From positions 13,454,001 to 13,518,000 of the forward strand of contig NC_087258.1 in NCBI RefSeq assembly GCF_037042905.1: a stretch of 64,000 bases of DNA, in the 5' to 3' direction. Origin of the DNA: Lytechinus pictus. Taxonomy: Eukaryota. Under the pieces are notes generated by a model, which was not told the origin of the DNA, made no database searches, and saw only the letters and a list, made by a program, of their open reading frames with translations. Each line of letters opens with the position of its first letter. The first letter of the stretch is position 1. Shown in pieces: positions 15,990 through 62,923 of the stretch. The position numbers and the translations under genes are program-made.

Positions 15990-16290
15990 TGATGCAAGCT
16001 CACAGTGTTTTCTTTTCCATCCTGCGACCTTGGTGCAAGCTCGCAAAATTATATTGCAGCCCGTGAGCTTGTCGCAAGCTCGCAGAGTTTTCTGTTGCAG
16101 CCCGCGAGCTTGCATCAAGCTCGCGAAGAATTCTGTTGCATACTGCGAGCTTGCGGCGAGCTTACGGTAAGCTTACGGTGTTTCTTGCAGCAGCCCGCAG
16201 GCTCGCAATAAGTTGGCTGTATGATCGCGTGTGATTGTGTGCGCAAGCTTATTAAGATTGCGGTAAGCTTGTCGCAAGCTTGCCGTGAGC
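15990..16290. repeat. Degenerate GCAAGCTCGC/GCGAGCTTGC repeat cluster (probable transposon subterminal region)
   Basis: More than 10 copies of the motif in both orientations. Confidence 0.6.
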
Positions 16291-17345
16291 ATAATTTATG
16301 TAAGGGTATGACCAATGCGGTGGTTCGTAATATACACCACAGATTGTGGAATTGAAGTTCCATTTTGTCTAAGCAGACTTTATGAGACTTACTCCCATGA
16401 AGTAATCCGACTGTATATTCATGGAGCTTAGGAAAAAAAAACATGTTAACAAGAAAGTACATCGATACATACAAGATGAGAATAGAATTAACCATGCGGG
16501 CATTCACATGTTGATTTTAATTTGTCGGCAAACGGCAAAAGCGTGATATTCAAAGCACTTTCTTGTTGAGTAATATGGGGTTTTATCTTCCCCGCAACCT
16601 CGAGTAGTCTAAGCTTCCACGTAGATTAAAATCAATCCGATACCACAATGAAATCTAGCCAATAATTTTTTTTCTTAATTTTCCTAATACTTTTCTCTCT
16701 GCTTTCTAAATATCAACGAATCTATAATATTGATATTCTTACTATGGTTTTAGAATACTTTGGAGAAAACAAATGTATATCGAGGGTTTGACTTTGCATC
16801 AAACATCCAGAATTTTTTATTTATTTACATATCATATCGATTATCAACCGCCCTGTTAATAATCACTAAAAGTCCTTTATTTATAGCTTAACGTATTTTG
16901 TTTCGCTAGACTATTATTCGTCTTTATGCTTATGATATAATTAGGCAGTTTTAAATCTAATATAAGTTTCGAAGTACTTTCTTAAGATTACAGATATCTT
17001 CTTATCTCATGATTTTGTCATTAAAGTTTCCAATAGTTTAATGGTTCCCGCCAAAAGTTGGATAGTCACATTTCATCGTTGATGAAAACAATATAGCTCT
17101 GAATTAAGTTATTGAAATTTGTGGATTTTCTTTTCTTCCATAACGTAGCCACCTAATCTTAAGATGAGTGGCTGTTAATGAATGCCTAATATTGCAATGA
17201 TAGGAATCCAACTTATTACTTGTTGCTATGTCTGTCTAGCATCTGGCAAGCTTCCCGGACACAAGGAATGTCTTATTTTTGGACATGACACCCCCAAACT
17301 AATAAGTCGACCCAAAATGAATTTCGATATTCTTATGAAGCTCAA

Positions 17346-17917
17346 AAGACAAGTCTATCCCAACCGAAAGTTGATTTGAATAAAAAGAGAAAAATTCAAC
17401 AAGCACAACACTGAAAATTTCATCAAAATCAGATGTGAAATAAGAAAGTTATGATATTTTAAAGTTTTCCTGAATTTCACAAAACAGTAATATGCACACA
17501 CTGGTCGGTATGCAAATGAGGAGACCGATGACGTCATTCACTCACTATTATATGAAATATTCTAATTTTCTCCTCATTGTCAATTGAAACAACGATTAAT
17601 TCCTCCCTGAACTTTTGGAATGAGCATTGTTTAATACTATAATTATGATTCAGTCAAGTTGGTCCTTATTGTCAAATCTAAAAAAAAAATGAAGTATTGT
17701 ATAATTCAAACAATAAAACACAAAAAAAATAGTGAGGGACATCATCGATTGTCTCATTTGAGTTGTGCATATCTCTGTTTTGTGAAAAATTAGCAAAACT
17801 TTGAAATGTCATAACTTTCTTAGTTTACATCCGATATTGATGAAATTTTCAGCATCTTGCTAGTTGGACTTTTCTCTATTTGTTCAAATCAACATTTTTG
17901 TGAGGAGGACTTGACCT
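17346..17917. mobile_element. Kolobok-like MITE (TTAA target)
   Basis: Long TIRs a(g/a)gacaagtc...gacttgacct with TTAA on the right; same family as 41039 and 47756. Confidence 0.75.
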
Positions 17918-49783: not shown

Positions 49784-50826
49784 TAAGTTTTTGGTTTTAT
49801 ATTCTGCACCATACTGAGTGTACTCCTTTAAAGGAGTATGTGTATTTGTGCACGCATGTGATAGAGTATAGTGTAGTAATATTACAAAATTGCTTGCCAC
49901 ATACCCCTTTTTATAATCATCGCTTCCCTGGGGTCTCCGAACCATCTATGTACTATTTGCTTTTTTATCACTATGTGAATCCCTTTTTATACTTTTGATG
50001 GTTGAATAAATGAATTGAATACGTGATCATGTACGTTGCATCATAGGGCCGGCGCGGCCGGACATACGTCGGCTTTACCTTTACTTACATTGGGTTTAGT
50101 ACCGCCCCATGTCCCAAACCTCGCTCAAATCAGACGCTAAACATGTAATGTTGCCACAAAAAGTACATTGTTTATAAAGCGTTTTAGTCTTTTTATACCC
50201 TCGCAAATTGGGCCATAAACACATAGCTTTCCTAGCAAAATATATACCCTTTTTCAGTATTTTAGTGTTTTTGACACCCTTATCATGTTACATACATAAC
50301 ATTCCTAATCTTGAAAAGGAGACGCTTTTTACATGTTTCTTTGAGCATGATATCCACTCGTCAATGGAGGCACCCCTATATTTCAGCATAAATGAGAGAA
50401 ATTTAAAAGGGTACAAAACTTTCCAGTTACCTGTGGATTTGGATAGACTTGGAATAATCTGCACACAATTTGGCACGCATCTCTGATTATCAAAGTCCAA
50501 TTACTCCAAGGCAGACCTAGCATACTCTTTTCATAAGGAAATTCCATGGCGATTTAGCTTAGAAATTCCACTCAGAAATTGAATATAAATATTTCAGGGC
50601 TTAATGAAAATATTCCATCAAGTTCAAGTTCCTCCAATATAACAAAAGTTACAGGTTAATAGAATGGACTTTGCTTTCATCATTGCTTAGCATCTGCAAG
50701 AGATGTAACCCCAGAATCAATATGCAAATTATTCTCAATATTCCACACAATATTAATGAGGGCATTGCTTTACAGACCAACCTTACGACCTTTGACCTTG
50801 GCTCGTGATTCCACAACCTCTCTGTT

Positions 50827-50928
50827 TTACTGTGTAAAGTCGCTCCTGATACGGCCTGTGCTTATTCTTGCTAACATGCTGTATGGGTAGGGTAGGGCTA
50901 CAGCACTGGCCTCATTCAGCCGCTTCAT
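50827..50928 (-). CDS. Aldo-keto reductase alternative terminal exon G2 (distal)
   Basis: ttttttcttgtcatcag|ATG...TAA, 102 nt. Encodes MKRLNEASAVALPYPYSMLARISTGRIRSDFTQ*. Confidence 0.85.
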   Translation of the reverse strand: MKRLNEASAVALPYPYSMLARISTGRIRSDFTQ

Positions 50929-51119
50929 CTGATGACAAGAAAAAACACATACAAATAAAACCAAAAAAACAAAAAACATTAATACTTGAATAATTCATCT
51001 CAGCTTGGTATTGAAGAAGATATATTTGAAATGTTTTTACAGGTATTCTTTGTAGGAAATGAGATGTGCTGATTGATTGTTTCATCCAATAATACAAATT
51101 ATTGAAGAAATATTGATAG

Positions 51120-51290
51120 NNNNNNNNNNNNNNNNNNNNNNNNNNNNNNNNNNNNNNNNNNNNNNNNNNNNNNNNNNNNNNNNNNNNNNNNNNNNNNNNN
51201 NNNNNNNNNNNNNNNNNNNNNNNNNNNNNNNNNNNNNNNNNNNNNNNNNNNNNNNNNNNNNNNNNNNNNNNNNNNNNNNNNNNNNNNNNN
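51120..51290. other. Assembly gap (171 N)
   Basis: N run flanked on both sides by a similar ~45-bp sequence. Confidence 0.99.
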
Positions 51291-51640
51291 AATTGTTTAA
51301 TCCAATGATACAAACTATTGAAGAAATATTGATAGATGGATGGATGGATGAATGAATGAGTGAATGATAAATGAATGAATGAATGATTAGACGAAAGAAT
51401 GATATTCCAGGTTTGGTGGGAGAAAGTTGCCATCTCCCCCCCCCCACCACCACAAAATACACTTTTTAATCAAATTCAATGGATGTTAGGATGGAATTTG
51501 CCTTCATTGTGGCCATGCATCTTCACGAAAGTATCCCAGAATAAAACGATGACTCTATTATAAATTTTACAGAATTTATGAGGACTATGCTCATCCACAC
51601 CTGTGTATGATATGTGTAATATGAAACCCATCCATGTGCA

Positions 51641-51742
51641 TTACTGTGTACAATCGGTCCTGGGACGGTCCTTGCCTACTTTAGCTATTGTGCAGTAAGG
51701 ATATGGATGCGAAACAGCGCTAGCCTTATTTAGCCGTTTCAT
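51641..51742 (-). CDS. Aldo-keto reductase alternative terminal exon G1 (proximal)
   Basis: gatag|ATG...TAA, 102 nt, phase 0 after exon F. Encodes MKRLNKASAVSHPYPYCTIAKVGKDRPRTDCTQ*; ATTAAA on the - strand near 51465-51470. Confidence 0.8.
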   Translation of the reverse strand: MKRLNKASAVSHPYPYCTIAKVGKDRPRTDCTQ

Positions 51743-52409
51743 CTATCATCAGGTCACAAATAAAACAAGCATATTAGGTAAAATCGGATTAAGAATAATT
51801 TTTTTTTATACTGGGCACCCAGACACAATAGCACAGAGGCTTTCAATCAGTAACTAAGTTGTACTGGCCAATCGAGATCATTGTAGCATGCACATTTCGT
51901 TCAAACCTCTAACCCAGAACCAATCAGAATTGATCTTTCATATTCATCGCAAACCTTTGCATTGTTGGGATCTGAAGTATTTTTAGTGGTGTTCTGTGAA
52001 AGAAATCAGATTTACTGCTTTATTGTTGAAGGAATGAATGAATCAATCAATTAATGAAGGAACAAATGAAGAAATGAACAGACAAATAAAGGCACAATGA
52101 TATGATATGTCAAACGATTCTTGGGTTATCGCGGGAACAAGGCATCAAAGGTATATATTGGCCTCTGTGACCTTCAACCTTTGAACTCCATACCCCTTAA
52201 ACTAAGCAGTTCCTTGTCACTCCCATATACATGATCAAAATATGAAGTCAATTTGTCAAATAATTATTGAGTAATCGTGAGAACAGGATGGATTGACAAC
52301 CTGGAAACATAATGCCTCCAACACCATCTACGGTGGACAGACGCATAATAACAATTACCAAGATCAACTCTTCAGAATTACTTCAACACACAAATATTTA
52401 AAGGATTTG

Positions 52410-52985
52410 GGGATATTTGACAAAGAGTTAAGTGTGACTTATTTGCTTTTCACAATGCACATATTTTCCTTAACCCCCCAAAATTGGTGGGGCTAAGCTC
52501 AGCCCACTTCCTTTGGTTTCACACTACATTTTAGCAAAACGGGCTAGCATGGTAAATAGTAAGGTACTATCTGGCCCAGCAAGAAAGCAGGTTAGCCAGC
52601 TTATTGCAATGCTAAGAGATGCAGTGTGAAACGAAACAAGGCTAAGGAAAAGTGGGGCTAAGCATTAGCCAATCACAAAAGTCAAAATTGCACGTTAATC
52701 ACGCTCTGTGTGGCAAAATCATAAATATTCATGAGCTTTGTGCGATAGACTCGGGTTAAGGCCTTAACCCCGGCTAAGCAGTATGGGGTTAAGAAAGAAG
52801 TGTGAAACAAAAAAAAAGATAGTATGGGGTTAAGGAAATGCAGTGTAAAAAGCATATTACAGTTATGCTTACACGCTGACTGGCACATGATATGTAACAC
52901 GCAATCTTATTTATAACAAATTGCACGCCTGATTTGCCTTTTATACGACTCTAAGTCACACTTAACACTTTGTGAAACACCTCCC
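52410..52985. mobile_element. MITE with a probable nested insertion (~52445-52860)
   Basis: Outer inverted caaagagttaagtgtgactta / taagtcacacttaacactttg; interior has ttaacccc/ggggttaag and tttcaca/tgtgaaa inverted motifs. Confidence 0.5.
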
Positions 52986-53141
52986 TGAGTCTTCCAATAC
53001 AACACCCTAATCCTTCATTGGCCTCTCATCCTAATCCCTTTACATTGAAAGCACCCAAATACATAATACCCCCATCGTCCCCTCCCCCTCTTTAGGTCAA
53101 TATATTATGTTGTAACCCTAAATTGGTATTCTACAAAGTAC

Positions 53142-53281
53142 CTGTTGGTCAGTAAGTTCCCATCCTGCGGAAGCACCCATGTTGTTGTTGAGCTGGTCTA
53201 ATGTCTTCACTCCGATGATGACGGAGCACACAGCTTCTTTCTGTAGCAGCCATCGTAGGGCCACTTGGCTGACAGTCTTAC
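53142..53281 (-). CDS. Aldo-keto reductase exon F
   Basis: ttgtag|GT...CAG|gtactt, 140 nt. Encodes (G)KTVSQVALRWLLQKEAVCSVIIGVKTLDQLNNNMGASAGWELTDQQ (QVALxW and cofactor-binding region). Confidence 0.93.
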
Positions 53282-54531
53282 CTACAAACCAGAATGATTA
53301 AAACTCAATGACTTTATGTTAAATTAGACTAATGAATATAACTTTTCAAATAAAATTTTTCATATTTTTTTTTCTTTGTTAAACCAAATAATAAACGGTG
53401 AAATGTGTAGAGCAAAATAGACATCAGACAACTGAGACAACAAAAATCAGTGAATTTAAATTCAAATTAGACTCTTTAATCAAAATGCTTTTCAACTTTT
53501 TATGGAAAACCAAAGTCAATGAATGCTACTTTTCAAAAACAATTTTTTTTTGCAATTTCTTTTTGTTCATCGGTTAAACAAAATGCACTCTTCATTAATC
53601 ATTTCACAAGGTACATGGTCCACTATAGGTAGTAATACACGCTTGTAGGCATCATTCATTTGTGTATATATGTCAGCAATAATTAATATAGAATATATTA
53701 ATAGAACGTCACTGTAGAAGGATATTAATAATTTTGATGGATGTGCAATGAAATGGTCTAAAGTATAAGCAGGATTATCAAATGCATGGAATGGAGAGAA
53801 ATCAAAACTATATTTGTGGCAAAATGGGTAGCTTGCAGTGGCAGGAATATTAATTTCTCAAAATGCATATGATCTGGGAAGGAACAGTTAAAGCCATGAG
53901 CATTGCAAAAATGGGCCAAGTTTAAACTTTTGAAGTTAACAAACGTCAAATTGTTTCAGTTCTTGAGAACAAAGCAGAACAGATGGACAGACTCCCATCC
54001 TTAAAAAAAAAAATTTATCAGATTTTTACAAAAAAGACACAATATCACAAGGGGGTTGTAAATTGCTCTCCTCATACTTTGTTTTTATACAGAGAATTTT
54101 AAACTTCAAGGTCATTCCAGATGATTCCGGTGGATTCATGAGGATTAAGGACCTCTCAAATTATGCTTCAGTAGAGTGTTTTATAAAAGGAACCCCTTGA
54201 TTCGACCAGCATGAGCTTGAATTAGGACTTTCTGTGCATACACAAAGTAAACCTCCAGATCGGGATGATCTTATTGTGCATGTGTTAGAAATGAGTTTTG
54301 TGAGACGTATATCTATCAGATATGATTATTTACGTCTGGGACCGACCTCTGACGTCACCATCCGAAAGACATGACCAGGGCTTGAACCTCGAACATGTAC
54401 ATCAATTTGTTACTTCCCCACATAGCTTGGAATACAGGCACATGCCACATCGTCAAGTTTAAATTAAATTAAATCTAATCTCTTATAGGGGTCCTATTGG
54501 ATGGTTGTGACTCTATTAGGGTTCAACCTAC

Positions 54532-54707
54532 CAGCCTCCTCCGCTATCGACTGCATCACGTCCAAGAGATTCCAAACTTTCTCTTCTTGAGCAAACTTCG
54601 AGAAGCTTGGCTGGCTCTCACTTTTGACCTCCCCTTTGGCTTCCATGAAAGCGACTCTGCTGCCCTCTGGGGGCGAATCACGTTTAATCTTACCCGTCAA
54701 CCACCCC
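54532..54707 (-). CDS. Aldo-keto reductase alternative exon E2 (mutually exclusive with E1)
   Basis: Long pyrimidine tract, cccag|G...G|gtaggt, 176 nt. Encodes GWLTGKIKRDSPPEGSRVAFMEAKGEVKSESQPSFSKFAQEEKVWNLLDVMQSIAEEA(G); same length and phase as E1. Confidence 0.9.
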
Positions 54708-55204
54708 CTGGGTGTCATGGGAGGGAAGGGAAAAAGGAGGATAAGGAAAATGAATAGACAAATGAATGGGCAAAGTAGACCTTGCTGCTGTTACTGGTGT
54801 GTGAATGGAGTGCAGGGGTGTTTCATGGTGTTTGGCTCAAACTTTTGCATTTTTAGCTGGCACTCATCTGCGTATTGCCCGAATACAGAAAATGCAGTCA
54901 AATCCAACAAAACACAATGAAACAAGCATATAGGAGGTCAAAACTAATGCTTTGCATTCTAGCCCACTTATTTGCTAGTTTGGCTGGCTAATGCAGCAAC
55001 AGCAGCTACAAATAATGCAAAGGTGTGAGCCGGGCCTAAAGCTATTTGTAAAGTAATGCATAACCTTGTGACCAAATGAAAATGAGACAGCCCAAGTGTA
55101 AATGATTTTTTTTTAATAAAGTGTGACCATATTTATAATAATTTACATTAAATTGTAACAAGAATGTACATTGAATTGATTGTTAGCAACAAGAATGCTA
55201 TCTA

Positions 55205-55617
55205 CAGACCTGCCAACCTTCTACAACAAAAAAAGTATTCTTAGAAGGAAAAAAAGTATTTTTTGACAAAAAGAGTATTTTTAAAAATTTATCTCAACAT
55301 AACAACCAGCCTGTTGTAGTGAGATCAGTGAAAAAACATGTGAAATGACTCTACTTGAAAACTTGATGACTCACCATTTTAAACATGTGCTCATAGGCAA
55401 GAATTTACTTGTTCTTTTCATGCAACAAGTTACTGGCCCGACACAGATTTTCACTGGTCTGGGACTGTCGCACCGGAGCTAGTCTCGCATGCTGTGTATA
55501 TTACATACCCCATGATCGGAAATTTAAAAAAAAGTATATCATACAAAAAAGTATTGGCGTATTCATAGCAAAAAAAGAGGAATAAATACTCTAAAAAGGG
55601 AACGGTTGGCATGTTTG
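55205..55617. mobile_element. TIR MITE
   Basis: cagacctgccaacc...ggttggcatgtttg ends, aaaaagtatt subrepeats, tatcta on both flanks. Confidence 0.6.
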
Positions 55618-56087
55618 TATCTAATATGAACTTTATTTACCTTTACATGATGTGACTAACAAGAAAGAATGAATGAGGTTCTCATTTGGATTTTTATTAT
55701 TCTAGTTATTCACAAAGTCATACATAACTTTACCAAGCAGTTTCAATGAAACAAATCCTGGAGTGATTCACAAAAAATATGTGTGACTTTGTGACAAGTT
55801 GCTCTTCGATTCATATTTGCGGCCAGTATATGATGCAACACAAAGGACAGATGTAGGTGTGCATGACTGCATAGTCATTTGTGAAGTTATGCATTGAATA
55901 CTCATCCTAGGGTTCTCCACAAAATCATATGTGACTTTGTGACAAATAAAATCCCTAGTTGCATGATGGACATGTATATAACGCATCACCGGAATGATCA
56001 GATAATGATCAATGGGTGTGCGCTACTGTGTAGTCATCAATGATGTCAAGTACACATTAAGGCATGATCTCTTTGTGGAACACCTCA

Positions 56088-56351
56088 GGGCTCCGTCTTA
56101 TAAATAGCTGAGATTGATCCGATCAACCACAGCTATGGATAGCCAACATTCTCAACACCTAAAATTCATGGTTTTTTTTTCTGGATATGCTGTATATTCA
56201 TACATCCATTGTTTTATTAAGAAATTAGTGTGTTTTCCCTGGTTTACAATTGATATTGTACAAATTTCCTTTGGAAAAAAATTGACATTGATGGATTTCC
56301 ATAGAGTTAAGGTCAATCGGATCAATCGTAACCCTCTGTAAGATGGGCCCT
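56088..56351. mobile_element. MITE, same family as 5386-5656
   Basis: Same TIRs, interior in the opposite orientation. Confidence 0.7.
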
Positions 56352-57367
56352 AAGTCCTGTAACACAACGGTTATCGATAAATCATATGCTTCATTTTCAT
56401 GATTAAGTATACTTTGTAGTCAATGTAATCAATCATTAAAAAAGTGCAGTACGATGATTGCTAAAGCTTTGTGTTATAGGCCTCAGGTGTATTTAACTGC
56501 ACATATACTGCAAAGTTTAGTCTACAAGAATGACAAAGTTTCTGCATTAGGCTTTTTTTATGAATTGCTTAATGGGAATTATTGCAGTTTGAATAATTTT
56601 CACATTGTTACTGCAACAGGGCTTTGCATCTAAATAGTTTAAAAGTTAAAGGGGGGGGGGGGCTGGGGCGATTTTGCCCCAAAGTGCTCAAGAGAGCACT
56701 GGAAACTAAAAAGGAGCCCTGGAAAATCCCCATTCATCGCATGTTGCAGATTTAGGCAGTAATTTGTGAAAAGTAGCCCCTAAAAATAAAAATTAACTTT
56801 TTTGCCTGTTACATGTACAAAGATGAGCATCCAAGTTGAACTGGTCTGAGCTTGCACCGAATTCATGTAATATTCGAAATGTCACTCAAATGACAAAACA
56901 CTGAATATACAACATACTTTTATCTATACCAAATCATAGAGATAGATTGACATTAGGCCTAGGAGTAATAGGACTAGATCTAGTGGAAGTCTTGACTCTT
57001 TAGGCTGACTCATTTTTCTCACCTTTTTTGTGTCTGAATCTGATCCAATATACCGGTAACTGTAGGAATGACGCACATGCAAAGGATCCAAATCATCCCA
57101 GGAAATCACCAAGTCGAAAGCAGGATTTGAAAAACTAACTAAGACTCTAACTTTCAGCTCCACAATGCAAAATCCGAATCGAATCCTCTTAACCGAATGC
57201 TATCTTAAAATGCTATCTGTTCTGGAATCTATTCCACAACCGAACCGCTTACTTGAGCATGCAACATACGTCAATTGCATGGCTTGTACGTGTAACTGTG
57301 CAAAAGCCGACCCTCGTGCATGTCATGTGACCAACAATTATTCATTCATTAAGGTGTCTAGGCATTC

Positions 57368-57562
57368 TAATAATAATAATAGGCATTTATATAGCGCCAT
57401 CTATCTAGAAATCTTCTATTCCGAGGTGCACAAGAAAAGAAAGTATGAGAGAGTTTGGAAGAGTGTCAAAGTGCCAATATCTCATACTGTTAGAAAAGAT
57501 AAGACTTTGGTTTAGATTTGAAGGTCTCCAGTGATGATATAATTCTTTAATTCAACAGCAAA
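57368..57562 (-). mobile_element. L2/CR1-type LINE 3' fragment
   Basis: The - strand carries a degenerate ORF2 C-terminus (...SSLETFKSKPKSYLF) followed by gcgctatataaatgcc and a (TTA)n tail. Confidence 0.55.
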
Positions 57563-57896
57563 TTATTGAGTTCTATGTGATGTATGATTAATGCAGGAAA
57601 TGGATGTCAATCACGGGGGATAGACAAATAATATACAATCCTATCCAGGTTTGTCAGATGGCATCATAGCTATTTTTTTCCTATTGAAATGTTTGCAATT
57701 GAGAAGCATTTGGCAATGATATGATGATCTACAGCAAAGCTTTGAAAAAAGTGTGATTGGTATGTACATCTAAAGGGGCATTCAAAAAAATTATTGAATA
57801 AAGTACATTTGAAACAAGCATGTGGAAGAGGTAGCCATGAGGATTAATATGCAAAATAAAATAAATGCCTGGTCAAGTGTGCATGTACATCCAATC

Positions 57897-58271
57897 GGTA
57901 AATTACCAATTTGTCTACTGCCACCTCATCCACTCACCAAGCTTCATTTAGTCTATTGCCCTTTCATCCATCAACATTTTGTCTTACAACCATTTGGTCC
58001 AATCATCACTTGGTCTGATCACCAGTTCGTATATATCCATTTTGTCTTAACCAGTTGGTCTATATCTATTTATTTTCATTCATTTTGTCCAATTAGACCG
58101 AATGGTATACGGACTAAATGGCTATTAGACCAACTGGTTATTAGACGACATGGTGAGTGGACGAAATGGCAATTAGACCATGTGGATATTAGACGAACTG
58201 ATGGTAGACTAAATGATAGTAGACGAGTTGGCAATCGGACGATTTGGCATTAAACCGATTGAAAATAAATC
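57897..58271. mobile_element. Foldback MITE, same family as 1312-1718
   Basis: Collinear similarity, e.g. cattttcattcattttg and ggactaaatggctatt. Confidence 0.7.
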
Positions 58272-58404
58272 AAAATCTCATCATCTTATACCGGCTTATA
58301 AATTTTTGTAAGCTAGCTTAGATGATTTTCTTAGATTTTCTCAAGCCCCCCCCCCCCCCCCACATAAAATGAATGCAAATAATAATACACAGCTTTGCTA
58401 TTAC

Positions 58405-58580
58405 CTTGATCATTTGCGATTGATTTCATTATGTCTAGTAGATTCCAGACTCTTTCTTCCCCCACAAATTCTGAAAAGGTTGGATGGCTTTCCCTAGCAA
58501 TGTATCGTCTGGTCTCAACGAATGCCACCCTACTCCCCTCCGGTGGGGAGTCTCGAGTCATTTTGCCCGTTAGCCAACCA
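58405..58580 (-). CDS. Aldo-keto reductase alternative exon E1 (mutually exclusive with E2)
   Basis: tgcag|T...G|gtaata, 176 nt. Encodes GWLTGKMTRDSPPEGSRVAFVETRRYIARESHPTFSEFVGEERVWNLLDIMKSIANDQ(G); in phase with exons D and F. Confidence 0.88.
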
Positions 58581-59135
58581 CTGCATTGTCAAGTGCAAAT
58601 AGCAAACCCATTTTCACAAATGCTAATGTTCGTTTTTAGCCAATCAGGCACCTATATAAGGGGCCGATTCGTCCCAACTGGAGAGTTTGTAGAAAGAAAC
58701 TTTATTCTTATTTGAAATATTGAAGAATTAAGTGACTTTTTTTTTACTTGATGAAGGCAAATACTTTATTCATAATGTAGGTTCACCTGATTGCCATCAC
58801 CAACTACAGTATTTGAGCATTTCTTTAATAAATGTAGAACCAGTTTCAAAGTGCACACCTCATCATCAGGCAGAAATTCATACAGACAATCATACAGAGT
58901 TGGTACATTTCTGCCTGATTTTTTCTTCAAGCTATTATGTCTTGTTCCTTTCATAAAATAATAGTATTATCATAAACCACTATATAAGACAAGCTACGAA
59001 ATTGATTTTTACTTTAATTTATGGTAATCAACATCAATATTGCAAAAGTAAAAAGTAGAATTGAAAAAAAGAATGATTTCCCTCACTTATCACTATATCA
59101 TTTTAGCAATGATATTGTTGGGGAAGCAGACTTAC

Positions 59136-59233
59136 CCTTTGAGCGGACTCCAGGGAAGAATACCAAGGGCTTCATTCTTACAGCAATCTACCAACTCCCA
59201 TTCCAACTCTCGATTTAAGAGACTGTACTGTGC
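59136..59233 (-). CDS. Aldo-keto reductase exon D
   Basis: ctag|GCA...AAA GG|gtaagt, 98 nt. Encodes [32 protein letters not shown](G). Confidence 0.93.
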
Positions 59234-59681: not shown

Positions 59682-59855
59682 CTGTAGTGTTATCCATCGG
59701 TTAAACCCCTTGTACTGACATAAATCCATGATCTTCTGCATCTGCCATCCGGTCACGTTGCTGGCCCCGACATAGCGGATCTTACCGGCCCTCACTAGGT
59801 CATCCAGGGTACGCATGGTCTCCTCAATGGGCGTGGCTGGGTCCCAAGCATGAAT
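59682..59855 (-). CDS. Aldo-keto reductase exon C
   Basis: atcag|ATT...CAG|gtaaag, 174 nt. Encodes [58 protein letters not shown] (catalytic His; GKIRYVGxSN motif). Confidence 0.95.
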
Positions 59856-61694: not shown

Positions 61695-61848
61695 CTGGTA
61701 CAGATCAATGTAATCAGTCCGCAGCCTTTTCAGACTTTCTTCTAAGCTCCACACAATGTTCTTACGGCTCAGTCCTCCACTGTTTGGATTGCTTGGATCC
61801 ATTTCAAAGCGGACTTTGGTAGCCAAAACAAAGTCTTCCCTCTTTCTC
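61695..61848 (-). CDS. Aldo-keto reductase exon B
   Basis: ttacag|G...CAG|gttaga; phase matches exon A. Encodes [51 protein letters not shown] (catalytic Lys in ATK; [13 protein letters not shown] motif). Confidence 0.95.
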
Positions 61849-62777: not shown

Positions 62778-62923
62778 TTTGCCAACCAGTTTCCCACTAT
62801 AGATTCAGAGACGCCCATCACATAGACATTAGCAGTGTCTATGAAGTTCCCTCCAAGCTCTGAAAATCGGTCCAAGATCTTATGAGCTGCTTCTTCATCA
62901 CACTGCCCTGGTCTGGTTGGATC
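62778..62923 (-). CDS. Aldo-keto reductase exon A (first exon visible in the window)
   Basis: ttttag|GAT...GCA AA|gtaagc. Encodes [48 protein letters not shown], including the AKR GxNFIDTAxVY motif with the catalytic Asp and Tyr. Confidence 0.93.

Follow-up and report, generated by a model that had tools for sequence, protein, structure and literature searches.

The question raised by this Lytechinus pictus locus is how many proteins are made from one gene in which two different exons have each been duplicated. The window analyzed here, a stretch of 64,000 nucleotides, holds a minus-strand aldo-keto reductase (AKR) gene with single copies of exons A to D and F and two copies each of exon E and of the last coding exon, G. 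A sequence-only reading had proposed that splicing could place interchangeable specificity loops on one catalytic core, giving up to four isoforms. Two isoforms are supported by our analysis and the four-isoform combinatorial switch is not. Our overall explanation, to which we give a probability of roughly three in four, is that E1 and E2 define mutually exclusive isoforms sharing a common core and a G2 tail, and that G1 belongs to a later duplication and is skipped.

The gene and its predicted fold

The gene is named "1-deoxyxylulose-5-phosphate synthase YajO-like" in RefSeq, and its predicted product is an aryl-alcohol-dehydrogenase/YajO-type AKR; among solved structures, the DepB enzymes of bacteria are its closest relatives. 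The exon layout, with duplicated E and G, was recovered exactly as first described. Exon A (62778-62923), the second coding exon, has AG/GT edges, encodes the catalytic Asp and Tyr (FIDTANVY), is recognized by Pfam PF00248 (E = 9.5e-10) and matches the RefSeq proteins P0235/P0237 exactly. Exon B (61695-61848), delimited by splice-site, frame, and cross-species searches, provides the catalytic Lys (LATK), and exon C (59682-59855) the catalytic His (IHAWD), with a Pfam PF00248 match at E = 3.5e-14 and PDB sequence matches to 4xk2, 7utf, and 8hwn. Exon D (59136-59233), placed by its splice sites and frame, ends in WSPLKG in phase 2, and the single-copy exon F lies at 53142-53281 (Pfam PF00248, E = 2.5e-8). 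Exons A, C, and F each score individually above the gathering threshold of the PF00248 (Aldo_ket_red) profile, to which all full-length relatives of the protein also belong. The tetrad D58, Y63, K89, and H131 is encoded in exons A to C, in agreement with the claim that catalysis resides in the shared exons, and is invariant in an alignment of 36 sequences. A search of the window did not turn up exon 1 (29 aa), which sits past the window end.

The proximal and distal alternative exons, E1 (58405-58580) and E2 (54532-54707), are 176 nt each; the two copies of the last coding exon, proximal G1 (51641-51742) and distal G2 (50827-50928), are 102 nt each, that is, 33 codons and a stop. At all four copies the acceptor is AG and the phase matches, and E1 and E2 each carry a GT donor, as had been noticed from the letters. 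Every join from D to either E copy, on to F and then to either G copy is open. The product encoded by E2 and G2 is an exact 329-aa suffix of RefSeq isoform X1 (XP_063965444.1 and XP_063965445.1; P0235/P0237 comparison), and that encoded by E1 and G2 is an exact 329-aa suffix of isoform X2 (XP_063965446.1).

The AlphaFold2 model (pLDDT 89.7) is an (α/β)8 barrel in which exon E comprises residues 221-279, including a low-confidence loop (245-254) and a helix (262-278), and exon G comprises residues 326-358. The top Foldseek matches are AKR structures (E = 4e-35), the best of them DepB (8hwn and 7utf), which is 43-45% identical to the sea urchin protein with a TM-score of 0.80 when normalized by the model and 0.89-0.91 when normalized by the PDB chain. 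In DepB, loop B (β7-H1) serves mainly in coenzyme binding and forms a lid that is disordered without cofactor, and loop C, the C-terminal tail, contacts the substrate and projects into the partner protomer's active site (PMC9427786). By analogy, exon E, which spans loop B and the helices up to α7, would encode the lid over the coenzyme and not a loop for the substrate. The structural premise of interchangeable specificity loops has to be amended accordingly. The sea urchin protein shares with the DepB/YajO/aryl-alcohol-dehydrogenase-like AKRs (8hwn, 7utf, 4xk2) the PF00248 domain, the Asp-Tyr-Lys-His tetrad, a long loop B after β7, and a C-terminal loop C that is likewise long and contains a conserved Arg. 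However, these solved relatives are bacterial and single-exon with one fixed loop B, whereas the sea urchin gene encodes two versions of it.

The E1/E2 exon pair

E1 and E2 are identical at 111 of 176 nucleotides (63%) and at 39 of 60 amino acids (65%), the two isoforms differ at 21 of the 59 residues of the lid segment, and the tblastn match of E1 and E2 within the window (E = 6e-24) is far past chance. The likeness stops at the exon edges, the flanking introns being without similarity, and the family-invariant residues G221, L223, G225, K226, R237, and P253 are present in both copies. Differences at the three codon positions number 14/8/43 (pS 0.96 versus pN 0.21); third positions are saturated and first and second positions conserved, and therefore E1 and E2 have long been read as codons. 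The pair is an old tandem exon duplication. Both copies are found in unchanged order in L. variegatus and Strongylocentrotus purpuratus, which makes three camarodont sea urchins with L. pictus; Diadema setosum has a single E. The E1 orthologues retain intact splice sites and amino acid identities of 97% (L. variegatus) and 78% (S. purpuratus), the E1 sequences of the different species form one clade (support 96/94), and 78 of the 80 nt upstream of the E1 acceptor are identical between the two Lytechinus species. The dN/dS values for the same two species, 0.09 in E1 and 0.48 in E2, both come from few changes.

The two exons are neighboring, homologous, and equal in length and phase, each with its own splice sites. 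The frame, at the least, imposes exclusivity, because 176 is not a multiple of three and inclusion of both copies, or of neither, causes a frameshift and premature stops. The RefSeq isoforms of L. pictus, L. variegatus, and S. purpuratus carry one E copy each. Taken together, E1 and E2 are most probably an ordinary mutually exclusive exon pair already present in public annotation, in which use of E1 is read from the RefSeq models. The suggestion that such an arrangement had no prior description therefore survives only in part: a full-text literature search found no paper describing the E isoform pair or an exon swap of this kind in an AKR, but both isoforms had been annotated.

RNA splicing was examined over a single 6-kb stretch, outside which E1 lies, in four runs, two of them from L. 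pictus, as Logan contigs plus one raw-read run. The E2-F joint occurs in three of the runs, and one RNA contig of 1777 nt continues from the upstream exons through E2 and F to G2. In run X15, contigs break at the E/F boundary, for which unspliced RNA or E1-F splicing could each account. Neither the E1 isoforms nor a partial S. purpuratus E1-F-G model returned an exact match when looked up in transcript assemblies, and P0170 likewise gave none. When the E-F-G portion of that isoform (P0237:227-358) was compared with the protein collection for transcript fragments with G1 or E1, four word-sharing candidates came up, none of them with a score. The nearest exon-level match, P0002, leads just to 1-kb unspliced contigs.

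One may ask whether a single E copy is used, the other being a silent, well-preserved pseudo-exon and the second RefSeq isoform a modelling artefact. The contig of run X1 goes through E2 unbranched, the joints to F seen in reads come from E2 while E1 is known from annotation, and the echinoid transcript P0162 is E2-type, all of which would fit. This reading would, however, have to accommodate the contrast between saturated third and conserved first and second positions, the retention of E1 with intact splice sites in three species together with the near-identical sequence before its acceptor, and the independent modelling of E1 isoforms in those three species, including older S. purpuratus releases, in which E1 was the form given. 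We consider it very unlikely and retain the mutually exclusive pair.

The duplicated last coding exon

G1 and G2 are identical at 73 of 102 nt (72%) and at 19 of 33 amino acids (E = 1.6e-9), and their 3′ flanks are homologous over about 190 nt. The ungapped L. variegatus assembly contains both copies (32/33 aa each) at a spacing of 652 nt, compared with 712 nt in L. pictus; a single G is found in S. purpuratus and in Diadema. The last coding exon, along with this stretch of 3′ flank, was probably copied in tandem within the Lytechinus lineage, later than the E duplication. Recurrence of both duplications in other echinoderms, looked for by tblastn, is thus seen for E in L. variegatus and S. 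purpuratus and for G in L. variegatus, but not for G in S. purpuratus nor for either exon in Diadema.

An assembly gap of 171 N (51120-51290), which is in no exon, separates G1 and G2 within the non-coding interval, and its edges are bordered by a 44-nt direct repeat (51076-51119 and 51292-51335, 93%). Both features would fit if two haplotypes, or a mis-join, had been placed in tandem at the gap, in which case the G1/G2 duplicate, or its linkage to the gene, would be an artefact of assembly. However, an identity of 72% is far under allelic similarity, and the independent L. variegatus assembly is colinear across the gap region, showing the G1-G2 tandem and both copies of the 44-nt repeat, about 91 nt apart. 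Moreover, four runs contain RNA contigs or reads that join exon F, to the right of the gap, to G2, to its left, so that spliced RNA bridges the gap. Within the limits of these data an artefact is already refuted, and we regard its probability as negligible.

The terminal exon in use is G2. The F-G2 joint (53142>50928, with GT..AG ends) skips G1 in four of four RNA runs, a 3′ UTR contig beyond G2 reaches about 50250, and in the two RefSeq-annotated Lytechinus species G2 ends every annotated isoform and G1 is in none. An F-G1 joint is not listed in the four runs; this absence is weak evidence because rare variants are lost from Logan contigs and only about three junction reads for the gene come from the raw-read run. 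Depth is zero on G1 and on the G1-G2 interval in both L. pictus runs, and G1 words occur in no L. pictus RNA run, though eight RNA-type runs of the same species contain exon C, at 100% of the words sampled. The sole contig covering G1, from the L. variegatus run X27, runs on for 155 nt into the upstream intron and is therefore unspliced at the G1 acceptor. A few G1-region words occur in six L. variegatus RNA runs.

G1 is nonetheless intact in sequence, although every RNA examined skips it. Comparison of the two Lytechinus species shows changes in G1 at 4 of 99 nt, three of them synonymous and one not (dN/dS about 0.09), and nearby intron windows of the same species pair mostly have 7-14 mismatches per 100 plus gaps. 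The per-100-nt conservation of G1 (95/4/1) is close to that of F (96/4/0) and G2 (97/3/0). It keeps L329, S333, Y339, P340, and R351, and ATTAAA signals lie downstream. Being intact and conserved, and not like a decaying relic, G1 may have some unseen use. That it serves as an alternative terminal exon under particular conditions, for example stress, or in adult tissues such as gut, gonad, or coelomocytes, nevertheless seems doubtful. If G1 were used, and if loop C were domain-swapped as in the homologue, one gene could, by combining G1/G2 with E1/E2, give mixed oligomers that bring together active sites and cofactor lids in several distinct ways.

The full combinatorial model, in which both pairs are alternatively spliced and one core is fitted with exchangeable loop B and C-terminal segments in up to four isoforms, draws on the intactness, phase, and acceptors of all four copies, and on the exon-like conservation of G1 with its low dN/dS, its retained family residues, the downstream ATTAAA, and the scattered words in L. 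variegatus RNA. It is opposed by the annotated isoforms, all of which end in G2, by the skipping of G1 in every run with no F-G1 joint listed, by the absence of G1 coverage from both L. pictus runs, by the unspliced state of the only G1 contig, and by the single G of S. purpuratus and Diadema. We judge four isoforms improbable. The alternative use originally proposed for both pairs is supported for E, where constraint, conservation in three species, RefSeq isoforms, and frame agree, and is not supported for G. As in alternative last exons and tandem terminal duplicates, G1 and G2 stand in tandem with homologous 3′ flanks, but the mRNA shows G2 alone, and G1 serves as a reminder that an exon copy which is intact and conserved need not be spliced in.

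Exclusion, likely function, and known parallels

In the explanation we favor, the exon encoding loop B, the β7-H1 coenzyme lid, and the helices that follow would have been duplicated in tandem to give E1 and E2, and their mutually exclusive splicing would yield two isoforms with a common catalytic core and G2 tail and a differing lid segment. The likeliest effect of the swap would be on the kinetics of coenzyme binding and release or on coenzyme preference, perhaps also on the active-site rim; a wholesale change of substrate class appears less likely.

Mutually exclusive exons that arose by tandem duplication are familiar from PKM exons 9/10, FGFR2 IIIb/IIIc, tropomyosin, and SLC25A3 3A/3B. 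Like these pairs, E1 and E2 are homologous and lie side by side, match in length and phase, each bring their own splice sites, occur one per annotated isoform with a break of the frame otherwise, and have been retained across species; they differ in that the host is an AKR and the E1-E2 intron is long (3.7 kb). This length rules out steric exclusion as the mechanism, and U2/U12 incompatibility is ruled out by the splice sites, all of which are ordinary GT-AG and U2-type in look. An inverted-repeat scan from D to F for docking/selector RNA pairing returned low-complexity or weak pairs only. The E1 donor is followed by a G16 run that is not preserved in L. variegatus.

The locus is otherwise an ordinary case of tandem exon duplication with both isoforms publicly annotated beforehand. 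It nonetheless offers a natural experiment on AKR loops, with two versions of the putative coenzyme lid on one core kept since before the Lytechinus-Strongylocentrotus split, and bears on the role of the poorly ordered loop B in the cofactor preference, release rate, and substrate range of YajO/DepB-type AKRs. For amphioxus, Lingula, oysters, and other relatives, cluster listings give length variants, and an E-type exon swap is demonstrated in none of them. Within this animal AKR family, mollusc proteins that share 53% identity with the sea urchin one are named HdRed in databases, names that would hint at NADPH-dependent reduction of DEH to KDG. As summarized in PMC8778563 (citing Mochizuki et al. 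2015), abalone HdRed is an AKR that reduces alginate-derived DEH to KDG. Algal grazing is common to sea urchins too.

One AKR gene with two duplicated exons

The coding exons of the AKR gene, all on the minus strand, were delimited from open segments and splice motifs as A (62778-62923), B (61695-61848), C (59682-59855), D (59136-59233, ending in …WSPLKG in phase 2), E1 (58405-58580) and E2 (54532-54707) of 176 nt each, F (53142-53281), and G1 (51641-51742) and G2 (50827-50928), each with 33 codons and a TAA stop. Every exon has an AG acceptor and every internal exon a GT donor. The sequence-only reading, which spans from the end of G2 (50827) to the start of E1 (58580), had described single copies of A-D and F with paired E and G, all with intact frames and sites; sequence, frames and splice motifs confirm this. 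Three exons (A, C and F) are each sufficient for a PF00248 (Pfam) match, and the catalytic residues lie in A (Asp and Tyr, FIDTANVY), B (Lys, LATK) and C (His, IHAWD). Exon 1 was not found within the 64-kb window.

A profile of E1 and E2 was searched against 1.84 billion representative proteins and matched mainly exon-sized fragments, plus a few full-length AKRs, one of which served as query to reach the sea urchin proteins and their cluster members. Translated with E2 and G2, the gene in the window agrees exactly with the last 329 residues of L. pictus XP_063965444.1/XP_063965445.1, named '1-deoxyxylulose-5-phosphate synthase YajO-like isoform X1' in RefSeq; translated with E1 and G2, it agrees just as exactly with the C-terminal part of XP_063965446.1 (isoform X2). 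Corresponding isoforms exist in L. variegatus (XP_041479809.1 carries E2 and XP_041479810.1 carries E1) and in S. purpuratus (XP_030842690.1 E1-like, XP_030842691.1 E2-like), so the E1/E2 alternative is already in public annotation. The earlier statement that no description was known thus holds for our full-text searches, which brought up no article on this sea urchin gene or on mutually exclusive AKR exons, but not for RefSeq, where both E isoforms are annotated in three species. Two further protein models, L. pictus XP_054768292.1 (P0238, 290 aa) and S. purpuratus LOC587705 (P0239, 315 aa), have ends that read E2 straight into the next intron; the listing of P0239 under another locus suggests that the S. 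purpuratus assembly contains a second copy of the gene, or a haplotypic one.

Database names of the relatives range from 'YajO-like' to, in molluscs, 'DEH reductase'. The latter derives from abalone HdRed, which reduces an alginate breakdown product (PMC8778563). For an algae grazer, DEH reductase activity of the sea urchin enzyme might be taken as a lead, and nothing more.

Age, use and exclusivity of E1 and E2

The two E copies share 63% of their nucleotides and 65% of their residues. Their 65 differences fall 14/8/43 on codon positions 1/2/3, with synonymous sites saturated (pS 0.96; pN 0.21), and the similarity ends at the exon borders. Saturated third positions together with exon-limited similarity indicate that the E duplication is old and that both copies have been coding ever since. 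We searched the orthologous loci of three other sea urchins with the exon peptides, and, as the sequence-only reading had proposed to check, both E copies were found in L. variegatus and S. purpuratus, with a single E in Diadema setosum. When the E segments were placed in a tree, E1 of L. pictus, L. variegatus and S. purpuratus grouped together (support 96/94), which places the duplication before the Lytechinus-Strongylocentrotus split; the position of the E2 copies and of Diadema is not settled in this tree. The S. purpuratus locus (L004) also carries, at 16130-16758 and 17769-17842, a tandem series of five or six D-like pseudo-exons, degenerate and interrupted by stops, upstream of the true D, and a truncated, frame-shifted E1-like relic upstream of E1. 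Exon duplication has happened more than once at this locus.

RNA was placed on one 6-kb stretch, with E1 lying outside it. Three RNA runs show E2 joined to F, and in run X1 one 1777-nt contig connects upstream exons with E2, F, G2 and the 3′ UTR. Contigs of run X15 end precisely at the E2/F and D/E2 boundaries, with intron contigs at a depth of 3-5, which fits a second path into F or, equally, unspliced RNA. For E1, use is indicated by three independent RefSeq models and by conservation. We conclude that E1 and E2 are probably a genuine, ordinary mutually exclusive exon pair. As far as we could find, such a pair is new for the AKR superfamily, although RefSeq already lists both forms as predictions.

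Exclusivity follows a frame rule: D-E1-F and D-E2-F are open, with either G after them, while inclusion of both copies (D-E1-E2-F) or of neither (D-F) meets stops. As to further mechanisms, the 3.7-kb intron between E1 and E2 is too long for steric hindrance, the absence of U12-type sites rules out U12-type incompatibility, and no convincing competing RNA pairings came out of a scan. Ahead of the E1 acceptor, 80 nt (58581-58660) are identical to L. variegatus at 78/80 positions, where most aligned intron reaches about 80-84%, a hint of a regulatory element. About 150 nt before G2 (50972-51119) are 94-96% identical, and for the two stretches together the level of most aligned intron is given as ~80-90%; both are candidate splicing-control elements. 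A 16-G run on the gene strand (58346-58361), about 40 nt past the E1 donor, is missing at this site in L. variegatus and so is probably not a conserved enhancer. Directly downstream of E1, a stretch of about 390 nt (57883-58270) composed of short repeated 'ttggtc/gaccaa'-like units has 64% identity to its own reverse complement.

The terminal exon copies and the assembly gap

The only N run in the window (51120-51290) lies between G1 and G2 in non-coding sequence, so that no reading frame crosses it. Correct joining of its sides is supported by three observations. F (53142, right of the gap) is spliced to G2 (50928, left) with GT..AG on the gene strand, in contigs or raw reads of all four runs; the L. 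variegatus assembly, which is independent and has no gap here, runs colinear with the window to the left and to the right; and the 44-nt direct repeat that borders the gap (51076-51119 and 51292-51335, 93%) is likewise found twice in that assembly, at a distance of about 91 nt. The last point also rejects the repeat as an overlap of contig ends in favor of a real small repeat. G1-G2 spacing is 652 nt in L. variegatus and 712 nt here, where the gap length is merely estimated. Elsewhere in introns and the 3′ UTR, RNA contig depth reaches hundreds to thousands in all four runs (50200-50400, 52400-53000, 54200-54400 and 55200-55600), with many variant letters and many loose ends; these stretches resemble expressed, dispersed repeats and do not look like AKR gene parts.

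G1 and G2 share 72% of their nucleotides and 19/33 residues, and remain similar for about 190 nt of 3′ flank; the duplication took in the terminal exon region as a whole and is younger than that of E. Among the four species compared, two G copies occur in the Lytechinus species only, so that the check in other echinoderms proposed earlier finds the pair in L. variegatus but not in S. purpuratus or Diadema setosum, each with a single G. The sole S. purpuratus tail has its first half in common with G2 and the motif VGKDR in common with G1, so that each copy has retained a different part of the ancestral tail.

The sequence-only reading had proposed a combinatorial switch with up to four isoforms. 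This is not supported: all six annotated isoforms end with a G2-type exon, and of the proposed junctions E2-F and F-G2 were recovered, the latter bypassing G1 in 4/4 runs, but no F-G1 joint is listed in these runs. That absence is weak evidence, since rare variants are lost from contigs and only about three junction reads of the raw-read run belong to the gene. In both L. pictus runs the RNA depth is 0 over the G1 bin and also over the interval between G1 and G2. A search of RNA runs with words from G1 and its flank returned no L. pictus run, though eight RNA-type L. pictus runs hold exon C, and 2-4 of 29 words in six L. variegatus runs; in one of these six runs, X27, a contig over G1 reaches 155 nt into the upstream intron, so the G1 RNA there is unspliced. 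G1 nevertheless does not appear to be decaying. It differs from L. variegatus at 4 of 99 nt (three synonymous, no indel), is the best-conserved 100-nt window from F to the gap (95 matches/4 mismatches/1 gap; F 96/4/0, G2 97/3/0), and retains the family-conserved L329, S333, Y339, P340 and R351. It may serve as a terminal exon rarely or under particular conditions, or have fallen out of use only recently. The G pair is a genuine duplication of which G2 alone is used in the available data.

Structural meaning of the swapped segments

In an AlphaFold2 model of isoform X1 (pLDDT 89.7), exon G covers residues 326-358 (a helix, a PYPY loop and a low-confidence final helix) and exon E residues 221-279, comprising a short helix after β7, a loop, helix 237-244, a low-confidence loop (245-254) and helices 255-258 and 262-278. 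The top structural matches are the bacterial DepB reductases 8hwn and 7utf (43-45% identical), which a sequence search had also picked out. The 26-residue loop C of DepB is domain-swapped so that it enters the partner protomer's active site, with an Arg modelled on the substrate, whereas loop B (β7-H1) chiefly binds the coenzyme, is disordered without NADP(H), and contacts the 2′-phosphate through a Lys (PMC9427786). The C-terminal tail would thus be the more plausible substrate determinant, and its second copy, G1, is the one not seen in use. For exon E, the earlier assignment of loop B to both substrate and cofactor binding stands for the cofactor, with substrate secondary by the DepB precedent (PMC9427786). 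The E1/E2 choice may be a swap of the cofactor lid, expected to act less on substrate class than on how tightly a cofactor is bound, how it is released or which one is preferred. Both E copies have the invariant K226 and R237, and their differences are concentrated in residues 241-262 and helix α7.
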